A stretch of DNA of 62,469 nucleotides, the filler included, from Choristocarpus tenellus KU-1152 (lineage: Eukaryota > Protista > Phaeophyceae), in the NCBI GenBank assembly GCA_964200185.2. It is 12 parts of 12 records of this genome, joined end to end, with 100 filler letters (N's around TTAATTAATTAA, not from the genome) between each part and the next. Parts side by side here need not be neighbours in the genome. Positions count along the whole stretch, not along the records: positions 47,189 to 54,066 come from CAXNAD020007156.1; 11 more parts are not named here. One strand, 5' to 3'. Positions within the stretch are counted from its first letter, which is position 1. Each line of letters opens with the position of its first letter. Shown here piece by piece: positions 46,094-54,447 of the stretch. A program made the position numbers and the translations under genes. The notes beneath the pieces were generated by a model, which had not been told where the DNA came from, ran no database searches, and saw only the letters and a list, made by a program, of their open reading frames with translations.

Positions 46094-47385
46094 AAACATC
46101 CCATTTTTGATGCCCTTTATGAGGGAGATCCTCCTTTGGATTTGGTCCAGGTGAGGAATGGAAAAGGAAGGTATATCCAGATGAAGGAAATCGCCCTTAC
46201 ATCTGACACGTTCACTCAAATGACATAAGATCACTACAGAGTCACAAAGGCCCCGAATGGACGCCTTAACTCCCCACTAGGATGCTATAGACCTTAAGAC
46301 CCCAGAGTCTGCTGCCGCTTCCCGATACTGGACATCAATCTCTCAACGTCCAAGCATTAAATTTCTATTTGATTCAATATGGTTGATCCACACGTCCAAC
46401 CTCTCCTTCCTAGTGTCGACCTCTCCTTCACTTCATGCACTTCAGTCTGTGACTGGTCCACTTGATTGAGCGCAGGTCCCCTGGATGACATATGATGATC
46501 TTCAGGGCGTACCCTTCCCTCAATCCATCCTTTTGCACCGGTAGAATCACTATTGGGTGGTAGTGAATATGTCGTTGGGTGCTGTATGTGTCTTGCTCTA
46601 ATTGAAGAAACTAGTCAATCCTTGCAAAAACCTGGTAGGATTTGATCCGTTTCTCTAATATGTCACATCAGAAATCAAGTCAACAAATCGGATGAAAGGT
46701 TATGTGTGCTTGTTTTGATCACTAAACTGTGGAAATAGTTACCCACTTGTTACCCTTATTCCACACCTCCCTACCGTTCCAAACGTCACCCCAACAACCT
46801 TGTGCTACCAACAACACCAACATCAATCCATACTGCCATCAGGATATCCACTCCCAAAACACTCCACAATATTCCACTCCCTACCATACTAAATCTTTGA
46901 ACTAGAAGACATCTAGCCCGTCCTAGCTTGACCCCTCCCCCACACATCATCCCACTAAATTGTGAGCAAATCGAGAGGGTGGGTGGACGGGTGGGAAATA
47001 TTTTTTTTATTACCTTGAACATGCCTGGTTTTACCCTGGATCCAAAGTATCTTAGAGGGTAGAGCTGCGTCCATTTGGGGGTCAAAATNNNNNNNNNNNN
47101 NNNNNNNNNNNNNNNNNNNNNNNNNNNNNNNNTTAATTAATTAANNNNNNNNNNNNNNNNNNNNNNNNNNNNNNNNNNNNNNNNNNNNCACCCAAAAATC
47201 GCGACATGAAAAAATTGACCCCAAATGGACAGCCGCCACCCCCTCCCAGATACTTTGGGTCTGGAGTAGACCCCCTGTAAGATGCAATTGCTCCCTGGGA
47301 GATGGATGCACGCATGGTGCCGCAAGTCAAAGAGCCAGGACAAACACTCTCCAGTACGCCTATACATCCACCCACAAATACACAG

Positions 47386-50300
47386 GGCACGACACCTTGT
47401 GTCAAGCGGTAATGAGGGGGGATTGGTAGCCCTGTATGGGGGAGGTGGCTTGCTGACGTCAGACAAGAGTTTCGCCTGGGAAGCATCAACAGGGACCTTG
47501 TCCATCAAGCGCCTCCGTGCAACTGAGGTAGGTTCATATCGCAACCCTTTGTTGAACTCTTATGAACCGCAGACTTAGACTCAACCTTCTGTATCGATAT
47601 TGGGGGAAAGTAAGGCACCAAGGTGTAGAGACATGTCACTGCTGCAGGTTCCTCCTGGTGAATGTCACACCAGGGTATTTGGAGCTGAAGGTGAAAGAGT
47701 CAGGTATTTGAGAACATTTATTCCCATCTTCTCTCCCTGGACTGATCCTCTCACAGTAATTCCCAGGTGTAACCCCTTTCTCCGTTAAGATTACCCCCAC
47801 ATTCTCATCCTGACCCCAAGGTCCCCTTTGTATAGATATTTGGTTTGGACTGGAAAGCACAATGGGCTGCTTCACTTGCATTGCAAAAGACATTGGGCTC
47901 TATACCACTCTGGATCTCTACCCTTTTTTTCACCCCTGCAATGATGATTATGGTGCTATCTGCCTCTCACGAACTATGGACAACAATACCTTGTGAAATT
48001 TTTTAGGTTGCAGGAGGTCTGGACTTCAAGGGAAATCATGCCCGAAATGTGGCCCTTGTCAACGCCACCATTGACCGCCTTCCATTTCTCAAGGTCAGAA
48101 GCAGTTACACACATAACAATTATGGGGTAAAAGAGTATGGCGACATGGTTGCGGTGGGATAGAAACACCAAAAGAAAGAGTTCATTATTTTTGTGTTTCA
48201 CTGCTTGTGCCACTGGATTGTGACTCTGTCTTCTGGAATAACAGAGACAAAGCTGGAGGACAAAACCTGGGAAACAGGATAGCATGGGGGACAGGATTTA
48301 CCAGTTTTTTTCCCATGGTGTATATTGATGGTCTGCTCACGGATGTTCTTGAGGTTCTCACCAGGGCTTGGCCCAGAGATGAACGAATTGTCATGACTTG
48401 GCAAAGGCCGACATCTCATGATACTTATGCCAATATTCCCCTTGTACACTACAAAAATATAACATTGCACCTAAAGACTAATAGGCTGATGGTGGAAACA
48501 GCTGCCAATGCTGCTGTAAAGGCTGGAGGGAAAGGCAATGGCGGAGGTCCACTGGGTGTTGCCGTCCTAGATGGGAATGGAGAGTTATCTCGATCTGAAG
48601 ATCTCCACCTCCTGGAGGGGGGGATTGTGGGGCTTGGGTTTCTAGGTCCCCACGTCCAGGCAGGGGACATTGATTTTCAGGTAGTCACTGTGAGAGGAGC
48701 CGTAGGATAGTATAGTAGAAGTTTGTTGAAGTTGTTTCTATGCTGTTGTCATTTTATTTGGTGTAAGTTATATTGGCTTCAATATTCTTTTTTTTTGTTT
48801 CTTTGAATATAGTCATATTGTGTGCGGAGAGCAAGAGGAGAGGTGCACAAAGCACTTGCACATGAGAGAAAGAAAAAAATCTCCCTAGATTTTCAGTTTC
48901 AAATGATCACATCTTAACCTTTTTTTTTTCCTGATTCAGTCGCTATGTTTCATACAATACTAATCCTTTCCATAACTAACCCAGAGGACATAGACAATAC
49001 CCTTCTATGAGACTTTTCCCCTGTCGATTAAGTGCACGAAGGGAGATTAGAGTCACATAGTAATGATGAGGGATCACTGAGAGCTGTCAATTATCTGCTA
49101 CATAGAATGTACGGACAGCTTACTATTGCATATAGCGGAAAAATAGACTTCTCCTCACCTGTGACTAGATGAATGAAGCAATCTCCCTCTCCTCTCAGAA
49201 ACACCCGAAAGTCCTGTGCAGCCAAACCTCATCACTGCCTTGCTTGTTTGCCTGACTGTGTGGGACAGGGTCACGGAGTACGAAATCTTAGCCTGTCGGA
49301 GGTTTCTAGCCTCAGAGGTCTTAGGAGATTAGAAGTGGAGGAGCTCTACCTTCCCAGCCCCCTTCCTTTCTCCTCTGCATCCTCTCCTGTGATGGTACTT
49401 GGGGAGGGGGGCAGGATTGTTGCTGCTCCGGGTGAGCTCTCAGTAGAATCGGACCCAGGTGGGAGTACCATCTGGCTGAAGCGTGTCTCTGGTCACAACG
49501 TCACGGGCACACTCAATCTCATGGGGAATAGCCTGAGGAATGCTATGTTGGAGGACATTAATGTCAGGTCTGGAGGACATTTGGAGGAGGAATGGAAGAA
49601 TGAGAGTGTAGGGGACGGGTTCAACTGTGAATCTTTCCGGTGGCATTTTTCTTTTCTCTAGATAACTTTTTTCTTTGCATGGAAGGCATGTTTTTTTCCC
49701 TTCCTTATTTTCCTTTCCAATGCTAGAGATGACTAAAACCTTAGCCCTCAACGCCTTCTATTGTACTCTGGAGTACATTAGTTCCCTCTTTTTGCCGTCT
49801 ACCTGCTCTTCTAATATTGATGTGACAAAATTTTTACAATCCCCATTTTCCGCCCTTCATACATTCTTGATTCATTCTGAGGGAGGCAGAGGGGTTGTAC
49901 CCAAGTTGGAGGTTCGTGAGCTGACTCTCTCTGCCAGCAGGGATACCTCCCGGCCCAGGCAAAGCTCCTTGGCAGTTGTGGATGAAATGGGAAGGATATT
50001 GTCAACAGAGGGTCTGCGATGGGTAGGGGAGGGAGAGGGGGGTGAAGGGGGAAAGCTTGAGGGTCTGCGGAGGTTAGGAGGGGGATTAACACTGGAAGGG
50101 GACCTAGACATGGGAGGGAACCGTGTTCTCAACTTTGACATGGGAATTCCGGACTTTGACAAGCTTGAGGTGTGTTCATTGATATGAATGTCACCGTGGT
50201 GAGGGACTAGGGTGAAGGGACAATGAAGGTGTACATCGAATCATACTAGGGTCATGCAAGTGAAATGGAGATGATGATATTTGCATGTATTGCCCCTTCA

Positions 50301-52947
50301 ACGCCCTGGTAGACCTCATTTTGATAAGGACTCGAGGCTTCGGTTCAAATCTGAAGCGACCCTCTTCAAAATAGTTTCAGATGAGCTCATACCATGTCCC
50401 AAATACAGCTCCCTATGACCACCCCTCTACCCCACCAACATTGACCTTGCCCATTGTTGGTAGAGAGAAAAGCTCAATCAATATATGCCTTGAAGCCGGA
50501 CTTTAATTTCAATGGGTGTGAACCATGCTAACAAGGACTGCAACACATCCTAATTCAGGAGCTGACAGTTCTAGGTGACCTCCGGCTAGGTCGCCACCAG
50601 CAACATGGCACCACTGGTGCACCCCCTGCACTCCTTGCAGTGGGTTTGGGCGGAAAGGTCACCGTAGCTGATACTACCATGCTAGACCTCTCTGTTTCCA
50701 CATTGGTCTGTGCAAAGGGAATTACTACTGGAGGAGAACTGTCTGCCACTTCTGCAGTTGTCACAGGCGAAATGCATGCCAACTCTGTATCTGTGGGGGC
50801 CGGGGGAATAATCATGACCGGTCACAAGACCACACGACTGGGCGGGACAGTGGGGATAGAAGGAGGGATCAAGATGGGAGGAGGGTTGATAAGTGATGCT
50901 ATCCTGAGAGATGTGGAGGTTGAAGGTGCCCTACGAGGGGAACTGGAGGTCGAAGGAGGATTGTCTGTAGGAGGACTGGCAGTAGGTGGGGGGGAATCTG
51001 TCCATGAAATTAAGCAAGAACAGCGGTTAGTTGTGGCTGGACGACAAGGGGAGCTAAGGGCAGCTCCAGGTTTGAGATACAATGATTTAGAGGGCACGCT
51101 TGTGACAAGCAAGATCTCAGGCCATGAGGTAAAGTCTTGACATGGGGCAAAGTACCTTAGAGGGTGGAACCACATCCATTTGGGGGCCAAAATCCAATGT
51201 TGCAATTTTGATGTAATTTTGACTATCGTGTTTGTTTGGAGATGTTAATATCCTTCTTATGGACATACCTTTTCATAGCGTAGACATTTTCCCTACTCCA
51301 AAATGTCTTGGAGTAGGTAAAATGTAATTAAAAACCCATGGGAAGCCAAGCCTCAAATGGACAAACAGGGCAAAACTCGTACCCTCCAAGATACTTTCAC
51401 TCCATGCCGCCCTTTTTGTGCTCCTTGAAAATATTCCATGGTTACAATAATTTCTTGATTGATAACTCTTGATAGTACAGCTTTTAAACCCCCTTTCTCA
51501 GCAATATATCGACTTTCATTACCATACTATTAGACCAACAGCTTTCTCTCATGCTTTTCCTCTCCGTCTTCCCCCCGCCCCTGCCCCAAATACACGCCTG
51601 CAAAGGTGACAGGATCAGTGAAATTTTCAGGACATGCCCTGGTTGCCCCAGCTCTTAACTTTGAGGAGGGAGGGGGAATAGATGGCCTCAGGAAACTGTC
51701 AATCTCCGGCCCTCTATCGGTTGGTGGCAATCTTACCGTTGCCAATGACTTCTCTTCGCATGGCTCCCTGTCTGTATCGGAGGGTTTGTCAGTAGGTGCA
51801 GAATTGAAAGTAGAGGGTTCAATATCAGTAGAGAGTGTCCTCCTTGCAGCCTCGGATGTGACAGTGGAGGGATCTCTCTCTGCTGGTGGCACAGTGATGG
51901 GGAGGGGACCATATATGGACAGCTCAGATGAGCGACTCAAGAGGGATGTGAAACGTATTGATGCGGAGGAGGCAGTAAGAGCAGTAAGAAAGATGAGGTG
52001 GGTACCAGTTGGCCTGGTGATAAGTTGGTCAATAAGGAATGCAAAAGGAGGTACAATGTAGTTGATGCACTCAAGTAGTGTGTTGGTCTGTAGTACTTTC
52101 TACCCATAGATTTGTAGCTAACTTTATAAATGCAACCCCCCCTCCTCTCCACGTCCATCTCTCATGTTCGACCATCATCACAACCTTCAGGGGAGTTACA
52201 TATTCACTCCGTCAGGATGAGTTTCCCTCCTTCAACTTTCCTGCGGGCCAGCACATGGGATTCATAGCACAGGAGGTAGAGACTGCTATGCCAGGAATGG
52301 GACTGGTTTCTGAGGATACCCACGGCTTCAAGGTGGTGGCATACTCACGGATAATTCCACTACTCGTTGAAGCCTTGGGTACAGTGCTTAACTGCAGTCA
52401 CAATGATGAAGATGAAGGAATTGGCTCTGGGAGGGGCTTAGGCTGCTGCTGTTGTGGTGAAAAGCTAGAAAATAATTACAAACAAGAAGGAGATCTTGGA
52501 GGATATGGATATGCTGATTGGGCAAGGAAAGAGGAAGAGGAGGAACAGTATGTCCTTGAAGGTAGTGGTAGGGCCAACATGACCGCTCAGCACCAGAATC
52601 GCCATAGAAGTGGTGTTGGAATAGATGAGGAAGAGGGGGGACGAGACTCACAACAAGACCAGCGTGGCAGACACGGAGGCAATGAAGAGGACAGTCTCAG
52701 GGCATGGGCTGGAGCTGATAATAAAGTGATGGCAAGTTCGACGAAGGGAGATAGTACAAAGATGACCATGGGGGGGGGACATGATCGAAGTAAGGAAGTT
52801 GCTGCCTTACAAACCAGGGTAGCAGAACTGGCCACTGAGCTCGAGGAGCTTAGGAGTAACCTGGAAGCACTAGTATGGGGGTCTGGATCTCTGCCCACCA
52901 CATATTCTGAGGAGATATTAGAACACAGTGAGGAAGTTGTCATTTAG
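47386..52947 (+). CDS. Spliced phage tail-fibre/tailspike-like protein with C-terminal Peptidase S74 (intramolecular chaperone autocleavage) domain; at least 8 exons, 909 aa visible, 5' end off the contig
   Basis: Exons 47386-47527, 48007-48093, 48477-48680, 49269-49567, 49890-50169, 50559-51128, 51606-51997 and 52191-52947 join with consistent phases, GT-AG ends and no stops. It contains SDERLKRDV...VRKMRGVTY...MGFIAQEVE...LV...VAYSRIIPLLVEAL, a terminal coiled coil, and upstream Gly/Val-rich beta repeats. Confidence 0.88.
51144..51402. mobile_element. MITE family 1, in an intron of the S74 gene, 15 nt from the donor
   Basis: GGGGCAAAGTACCTTAGAGGGT...GATACTTTCACTC; TSD CAT/CAT. Confidence 0.92.
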
Positions 52948-54447
52948 AAAGGTAAATTTCATTATTCCTTTGGATAGATTGATTCGCACGAGCTCGGAAG
53001 AATGTGGAGGAAGCTGGAGGGCGTTCCTGTTGACATTGAGCTCATAGTCTATTAGCCACAGTACTGCATGAGAGCAGGGGGTGGAGGTGTTGAGGGGAGC
53101 TGTATAAGAAAGAGGCTTTTTTCTGTAGTTTCGAAGTAGTAGTAGCAGGGATCAGGGGAATGATAGCAAGTAGATGTACTGTAATGCAGGAGTATAGCGA
53201 GATGAAGTATATTTGAGCCACCTTCTTCTTCATGCACCTTCTTCTTCGGGTGGGAAATCACTTCAAGTGCCTGAATTTTCCCTCTGTTGGATAGGCATTG
53301 GTGTGGTCTGTATCGGAGTATATGCAAACAACTAATATGGAGTATGTAAAATATTACTATATTAGTAGCGACTTCTCTCCTAGGGGAGTCGATAAATAGG
53401 AATAGGGTCAACAGTCCAGCTCTTCAATCTTGGTTGAGCAAGGTGAGACTCCAAAGTAGAGTAAACACTGTGTATATGCTAAAAAAAGTTGGGGGTGCTT
53501 GAATAGATAGTAGTGAGGGCTGCTTCCTAATCTCTTCTATGTGTGTAAACTTTTCCTTTTCACTTTGCTTGGGAAATGTGCAAATATTTTCAGCCTTGAA
53601 GGGTGGCTCAATTCTCTACTGAATGCAGAATTTTCTTCTCCTCACCATTATTGGCGACATTTTAGATCCCAGTTAGCGAATGGGCTGGTGCACCAGTGAA
53701 CTTTGCAAGGGGTGTTATTTGCAAAGGTTTCATTGTGCAACTTCAGAGAAGATAACAGGATGTGCATGGTGTGGCTGGAGACAGCACTACTGTTTTTTTT
53801 GGCTTCACCAGATACTGATGACCCATGGTTGGTGGTGATATGGGGGCGCCTGTAACAGATATGTCCATCCTGTAATATTTCGTACTCTGGCAGACTATCC
53901 ATGGCTAAGAACATCTCCACAACTCACAATTGAATATTTTTACATCTATGTGCCATGATGTACTTACTCTGCACTCAACCTTTCTGTATTTGGGTATCAC
54001 CCTAAACAGGGATTTCTCAAAATTGAGGATGGTGCAGGACTATGAGGATGGTTGTTTGCGAAAACGNNNNNNNNNNNNNNNNNNNNNNNNNNNNNNNNNN
54101 NNNNNNNNNNTTAATTAATTAANNNNNNNNNNNNNNNNNNNNNNNNNNNNNNNNNNNNNNNNNNNNACCCCAAATGGACAGCCGCCACCCCCTCCCAGAT
54201 ACTTTGAGCCTCATACTTTGAAGCATCCCATAAAAATAACAAGGATCAGATAGATACACATGTATCACCAGACAAGTTTAAGGTGGTCTAGAAATGAGGG
54301 AAAAATTCCAGAGGTCGGTCGTCAGGCCCCGCTTGGTCCGCCTATCATCACGTACCGTACAATGTAAAGTTTCGAATGACTGGTACAGTAGAGTAATATA
54401 TTTATTGTTTTCAAGTAGATTTGAGGTAAAAGTTGCAAGTTCAATAC

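Follow-up and report, generated by a model that had tools for sequence, protein, structure and literature searches.

Choristocarpus tenellus KU-1152 (Phaeophyceae) carries an intron-rich gene for a fibre protein that ends in a Peptidase S74 (PF13884) chaperone, and the 62,469-nucleotide stretch of DNA analysed here (12 joined parts of assembly GCA_964200185.2, filler included; the window) holds only the 3' half of this gene. The stretch examined is the part from CAXNAD020007156.1, positions 47189-54066, in which the gene model runs from 47386 to 52947 on the plus strand; the original remark on decayed transposable elements refers to sequence beyond this part and was set aside. By comparison with its homologues, this is a real, conserved nuclear gene of a family common to oomycetes and ochrophytes. 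The product is very probably a secreted, trimerising, self-cleaving fibre. The best explanation overall, to which we assign a probability of about 0.52, is a self-processing trimeric fibre that most likely serves the tripartite flagellar hair as a minor structural component. Gene structure, conservation from oomycetes to algae and the chimeric architecture of the protein are the best-supported claims.

The splice model, rebuilt by script, exactly reproduces the original prediction of an eight-exon GT-AG chain: one nucleotide, 909 codons and a TAG stop, with matching phases and no internal stop. All seven introns (193-588 nt) contain stops in all three frames, and the guanine-cytosine content is 0.50-0.58 in exons versus 0.40-0.45 in introns. 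A start codon is missing from the model: exon 1, which lies 197 nt inside the edge of the piece, opens mid-codon. Because exon 1 aligns near residue 730 of full-length homologues, at least about 730 upstream codons are missing from the window, and the N-terminal half of the fibre family finds no match anywhere in the piece. Two contigs, L003 and L004, match all eight exons in order. At all seven junctions, donor and acceptor lie at the same codon and in the same phase in L003 and L004, a few donors being GC and the exon 8 acceptor being read in L003 only. Identity by codon position between the window and these two contigs is 0.60/0.68/0.30 and 0.53/0.68/0.31, and the proportion of synonymous differences (pS) is about 0.75 versus about 0.4 for nonsynonymous differences (pN; 0.38 in one comparison). 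Long-term purifying selection is acting on the protein. The recurrence of all seven intron positions at two orthologous loci, together with nearly saturated synonymous sites, marks the gene as an old host gene. A chance chain of exons is rejected, given the exon order and splice sites conserved in L003 and L004, and a pseudogene is rejected as well. The features below were assigned from the splice model, from matches to homologues and from a profile hidden Markov model (HMM) of the internal fibre repeat.

47189-47385, plus strand: 3' end of the upstream intron, truncated where the piece begins; 5' exons lie beyond
47386-47527, plus strand: exon 1 (internal, opens mid-codon), first half of conserved fibre repeat 1; splice model and homologue match
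48007-48093, plus strand: exon 2, second half of repeat 1; 82% and 69% identity to L003 and L004, repeat HMM
48477-48680, plus strand: exon 3, repeat 2; L003/L004 match, repeat HMM, many exon-sized homologues
49269-49567, plus strand: exon 4, repeat 3; L003/L004 match, repeat HMM
49890-50169, plus strand: exon 5, degenerate repeat; 36-38% identity to L003/L004 over all 93 residues
50559-51128, plus strand: exon 6, Gly/Val-rich beta spacer and start of the last repeat; L003/L004 match, repeat HMM
51606-51997, plus strand: exon 7, end of the shaft, conserved GxGxYxDS motif and start of S74; PF13884, homologue match
51924-51941, plus strand: SDERLK, predicted catalytic Ser and Lys and S74 cleavage site, starting at model residue 634
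51998-52190, plus strand: intron 7, 193 nt, phase 2, within the S74 domain; L003 and L004 have their donor at the same codon
52191-52947, plus strand: exon 8 (last), remainder of S74, low-complexity insert of about 135 residues, terminal coiled coil and TAG stop; PF13884, homologues

Profile searches were run with single exons as queries. Exon 1 shares 68% (L003) and 64% (L004) identity over its full 47 residues and is 36-40% identical to oomycete proteins, and it scores 38.4 bits against a repeat HMM built without the window sequence. Exon 5 does not match the repeat HMM, and exon 6 as sole query found no homologue in one search and only weak Atlas matches in another. Exon 8 shares 47-50% identity with four oomycete S74 domains over 62 residues. 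A search with the internal-repeat profile matched 38 proteins, many of them exon-sized fragments; low-scoring unrelated matches (e.g. P0003, P0018 and P0022) were set aside.

Intron 7 is absent from L001 and L005, and Phaeothamnion is without the first intron. A burst of intron gain has been reported just before the split of brown algae and Schizocladia (10.1101/2024.02.19.579948), which agrees with a probable host among brown algae or their close relatives. Introns 1 and 6 (donors 47528 and 51129) each cut a repeat copy, and they do so at the same residue and in the same phase. Independent insertion at the same proto-splice site is judged likelier than exon duplication, because the first repeat of Phaeothamnion has no intron.

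By profile and motif, the protein is a member of the S74 family. The original prediction that an intron splits the chaperone is borne out by complementary PF13884 halves on either side of intron 7, with exon 7 covering profile positions 1-24 and exon 8 positions 25-57. Exon 7 alone scores 16.7 bits, under the 22-bit cut-off, and exon 8 alone 25.1 bits, over it; the homologue P0040 scores 58.7 bits. The S74 domain and its Ser-Lys motif SDERLK are intact, as had been claimed. The 633 residues before SDERLK contain 17% Gly, 13% Leu and 10% Val, in agreement with the predicted Gly/Val/Leu-rich region of about 650 residues. Both SDxRxK and the longer motif GSGxYxDxSDxRxK are kept in all ten homologues checked, and the motif at the distal tip hardly varies between oomycetes and algae. 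The Ser-Lys dyad and the self-cleavage mechanism of S74 have been defined (PMC3742443, PMC10769870). S74 is C-terminal and a coiled coil follows it as foreseen, but the two do not adjoin, since the low-complexity insert separates the chaperone core from the coiled coil. The search with exon 8 matched several PHROG tail-fibre families and no solved structure, and that with exon 7 gave no phage match. In a crude hydropathy scan, the highest 19-residue value in exon 8 (1.67) lies inside a chaperone helix, and no transmembrane segment is seen after the chaperone. A tree of 17 S74 sequences is unresolved and does not point to a donor, be it phage, giant virus or bacterium.

The N-terminal half of the protein is known from homologues. 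Full-length members are found in the oomycetes Saprolegnia, Achlya, Thraustotheca and three Aphanomyces species, and partial ones in the ochrophytes Rhizochromulina marina and Phaeothamnion confervicola; the deposits are labelled hypothetical, EGF-like or S74-containing, and the named homologues among the matches listed are all stramenopile. The full-length proteins open with a hydrophobic signal-like peptide, followed by an EGF domain, a CPxGxDP linker, an insert of about 125 residues and a second EGF domain, and a crude hydropathy scan shows hydrophobic N-termini and no clear transmembrane segment. Their domain matches are EGF and S74 only, with no Ndt80 domain. The EGF module lies 6-7 kb upstream on the same strand in L003 and L004, and it is also present in L001 and L002. 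The deposited Phaeothamnion model CAM9517815.1 is truncated, its second EGF region lying upstream of the annotated start (L001:45-362).

Against solved structures, the six tubular-mastigoneme subunits of PDB 9UFE rank first for the N-terminal module, both with a single sequence and with a profile. The profile E-values for the 9UFE chains are 4.5e-25 to 5.8e-14, versus 3.3e-7 for the next EGF protein, and the best alignment runs past EGF into the insert typical of OCM proteins. Each 9UFE subunit is present as three chains, which would fit a trimeric partner. The predicted fold of the insert is nearest to a tail-tip domain of mycobacteriophage Bxb1 (Z 11.5, root-mean-square deviation 2.2, 103 residues) and to a capsid domain (Z 8.3); 9UFE is not among the matches of the fold searches and possibly lies outside the fold libraries. 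Insensitive pattern scans gave no viral relative of the N-terminal module or of the middle domain, and no prokaryotic relative. A further 775-residue secreted protein (L015:1541-3868) has two tandem OCM-type EGF-insert-EGF modules, and its PDB matches at E <1e-5 are the six 9UFE chains only; it is an unnamed OCM paralogue.

The shaft resembles virion fibres. The fibre repeat is 72 residues long; oomycete members have one copy, other members 3-10 and the window four or more. It matches a marine virus protein with 30% identity over 105 residues, and this protein scores 49.9 bits with a repeat HMM from which window and virus sequences were left out. The shared repeat supports common ancestry with virion fibres; it gives neither the direction of transfer nor the donor. 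Matches to PHROG tail-fibre profiles reach as far as about 150 residues upstream of S74. The modelled C-terminal part of the Saprolegnia protein is similar at residues ~625-711 to tailspike and baseplate domains of phages (Z 6.2-8.4) and at its end to the chaperones of MYRF, K1F and T5. No close viral homologue was found in three scans. The earlier proposal of a domesticated fibre gene agrees with the phage-fibre-like shaft, the intronised host gene and the purifying selection, but such an event would be neither recent nor lineage-specific. An IMG/VR contig (L014:3392-7702) encodes a 1,436-residue protein with the fibre repeat, for which no PHROG or S74 match was seen. In the shaft of family member P0013 (L002:10001-13297), a 44-residue half-repeat has expanded in tandem, to all appearance recently, which implies that fibre length changes quickly.

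The full protein is predicted to comprise a signal peptide, an OCM/Mas-type EGF-insert-EGF module, a Gly-rich beta shaft, a tailspike-like domain, 1-10 repeats, a beta tip and S74. In the proposed mechanism, the chain would enter the endoplasmic reticulum, three S74 domains would nucleate a trimer from the C-terminus, the shaft would fold as an intertwined beta fibre, and the Ser-Lys dyad would cut the chaperone off. The self-processing trimeric fibre of the original prediction is therefore probable by the mechanism of the S74 family; what had not been foreseen is that the full protein is a chimera with a eukaryotic, mastigoneme-like N-terminal module. Because this module is OCM-like, docking on the OCM shaft of the hair is suggested, and the fibre would then project from the hair as a tip filament or as an adaptor that carries one. 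Tubular hairs consist of a base, a shaft and one to three terminal filaments (PMC2108286). Location in the tripartite tubular hair stands at even odds on the present sequence comparisons. A wider view, in which the hair is partly built from co-opted phage modules, with the S74 fibre forming or carrying the terminal filaments and the insert shared with OCM proteins being related to a phage tail or capsid domain, is tentative and rather unlikely; the point on the insert draws on the likeness of its predicted fold to the Bxb1 tail tip.

Several observations weigh against the best explanation. The protein is not among the six solved shaft subunits, and other stramenopile EGF proteins, of no known role, have the OCM-type module too, so that the module does not prove hair location. 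A Phytophthora candidate, PPTG_14518 (812 residues; identity not verified), is not enriched in the flagellum: it occurs in both zoospore fractions with counts of 6,5,5,5 versus 1,3,9,5 (column order inferred from the Mas rows), whereas Mas1-3 are 3-6-fold flagellum-enriched in the same dataset. This candidate has a signal peptide, EGF and a 'protein autoprocessing' tag, which could stem from another domain. The middle domain gives modest Z-scores, and the overall quality of the C-terminal model is poor, with a mean predicted local distance difference test score (pLDDT) of 48 and two confident regions. Many terminal filaments are probably longer than one trimer of this kind. The length of a single trimer is put at roughly 50-100 nm, scaled from the 550 Å model of Bd3182 (PMC10769870).

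The same secreted fibre may instead work off the flagellum, where it would serve zoospores, gametes or cysts as an adhesive or surface spine, or the cell wall as a fibre, and this is a serious though less probable explanation. It would act like the MAT adhesins of Bdellovibrio, and the OCM-like module would serve assembly or anchoring in general. S74 fibres are indeed adhesins in phages, Bdellovibrio (PMC10769870) and polinton-like viruses (PLVs), the repeat number of 1-10 varies as in adhesins, the N-terminal module is common to other EGF proteins, and the unverified candidate PPTG_14518, not enriched in the flagellum, would point the same way. However, the structurally characterised close carriers of the module are mastigoneme subunits only, and the nearly invariant tip is unlike the host-tracking tips of adhesins. 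The named hosts also all come from flagellate lineages, which counts against an adhesive role. Among the roles originally listed, the flagellar hair is favoured over the cell wall and the viral decoy because the N-terminal module is eukaryotic and mastigoneme-like.

Readings that place the protein closer to viruses or to transcription factors fare worse. A secreted antiviral decoy or defence fibre, or a receptor-like ligand under host selection, is improbable: the shaft repeat and S74 do resemble virion fibres, which protist giant viruses and PLVs use, but neither family expansion at the loci nor a variable tip is seen, the genes beside family loci are ordinary host genes (e.g. ISN1, a dynein heavy chain and a WD40 protein), and the N-terminal module and middle domain have no viral match in the insensitive scans. 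Fibres of PLVs and giant viruses end in S74, as would a recently intronised relic of such an endogenous virus. This origin is very improbable and largely refuted by the presence of orthologues in both oomycetes and ochrophytes, the conservation of seven introns, synonymous sites close to saturation, selection and the eukaryotic EGF exons upstream, together with the lack of viral neighbours and of a close viral homologue. A membrane-tethered transcription factor of the MYRF/MrfA type would share the S74/ICA domain. It is refuted, with scarcely any probability left to it, by the architecture of full-length homologues, which have EGF and, as the original prediction had it for the gene, no Ndt80, by the EGF exons upstream in the closest orthologues and by the missing transmembrane segment after the chaperone.

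The family combines features of several known systems. Like the OCM/Mas/Sig proteins (PDB 9UFE; Phytophthora PnMas1-3), its members are stramenopile proteins, secreted by prediction, with EGF, CPxGxDP linker, insert and closing EGF. The OCM/Mas proteins contain three to four EGFs, and neither a beta fibre nor S74 is described for them, whereas the fibre family has only the last EGF pair, followed by about 700-1,400 residues of phage-like fibre and chaperone. Homologues do have the OCM-type EGF module and, by crude hydropathy, a signal peptide and no transmembrane segment; with two EGFs and then a long fibre and S74, they depart from the defined OCM/Mas architecture (PMC12223298). By these comparisons, the family is related to OCM/Mas and is not to be classed as an OCM/Mas protein. 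With phage fibres and tailspikes (K1F endosialidase, T5 L-fibre) it shares the C-terminal SDxRxK chaperone and coiled coil, the beta shaft, the tailspike-like middle domain and the repeat. Unlike these, it is nuclear and intron-rich, and a signal peptide and disulphide EGF module replace the virion-attachment domain.

The MAT fibres of Bdellovibrio (PMC10769870) are likewise cell-encoded, secreted mosaic trimers of about 1,000 residues with a constant N-terminal domain, and they too occur in S74 and non-S74 forms, P0046 and P0047 being the non-S74 paralogues in the fibre family. However, they are bacterial, number 21 copies and have varied tips, and the fibre repeat is not shared with the Bdellovibrio-like S74 proteins compared by repeat HMM. 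In its predicted mode of action the protein is thus akin to phage tail fibres and to MAT fibres, but it belongs to neither. P0046 (L007:8001-10874) and P0047 (L008:1799-4459, maybe incomplete) combine the OCM-type EGF module with the first beta shaft, show no S74 match and end in a different Gly/Ser-rich C-terminus; they are candidates for other hair filaments. In L009:1-21211, at least four long S74-ending genes stand in tandem, two of them followed by fibrinogen-C genes, in an arrangement like a Bdellovibrio-type MAT cluster.

The original prediction named MYRF and MrfA as the well-studied eukaryotic users of S74. They share the ICA domain and Ser-Lys dyad, and differ in their Ndt80 DNA-binding domain and transmembrane anchor, both absent from the fibre family; but other users are on record, among them TLP-12 and the fibres of PLVs and giant viruses. 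The TLP-12 glycofibril candidates of Amoebophrya and other alveolates (10.1101/2025.09.30.679562) are also trimeric beta fibres with a C-terminal ICA proposed as folder, although they are dodecapeptide-repeat proteins of about 20,000 residues with a different repeat and no reported EGF/OCM module. In the PLV and giant-virus fibres (PMC12220804, PMC13659346), S74 likewise ends modular fibres in protist genomes or viruses, although the genes lie within viral elements and conserved host introns or an OCM module are not reported.

S74 fibres have thus been recorded in phages, Bdellovibrio (PMC10769870), eukaryotic viruses (PMC12220804, PMC13659346) and, as a proposal, dinoflagellates (10.1101/2025.09.30.679562). 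No description of a mastigoneme/S74 fusion was found in the accessible literature, which leaves out most subscription papers, and the family is apparently undescribed. Nor was any paper found that names the proteins of the terminal filaments or explains the origin of the hairs. Tubular hairs are the defining structure of stramenopiles, and with the subunits of the mastigoneme shaft solved, the family offers a specific, conserved candidate for a further hair component. The candidate has a built-in assay in self-cleavage at one serine, and its hosts include organisms amenable to knock-outs and flagellar proteomics. Besides MYRF, the family would also give an ancient case in which a eukaryotic secretory pathway employs the phage S74 chaperone to make a structural fibre; if the fibre is adhesive instead, it would still be conserved and uncharacterised, a fibre on the surface of swimming cells in oomycetes and algae.

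Downstream of the stop, 52948-54066 contains no clear coding sequence. Among the non-coding parts of the gene, intron 6 has one 18-bp hairpin at 51284-51325. Related short stretches occur in the upstream intron (47205-47260) and in intron 6 (51175-51209 and 51350-51400), with 16 nt at 94% in direct and 35 nt at 71% in inverted orientation; near chance level, they are possibly traces of a small dispersed repeat.

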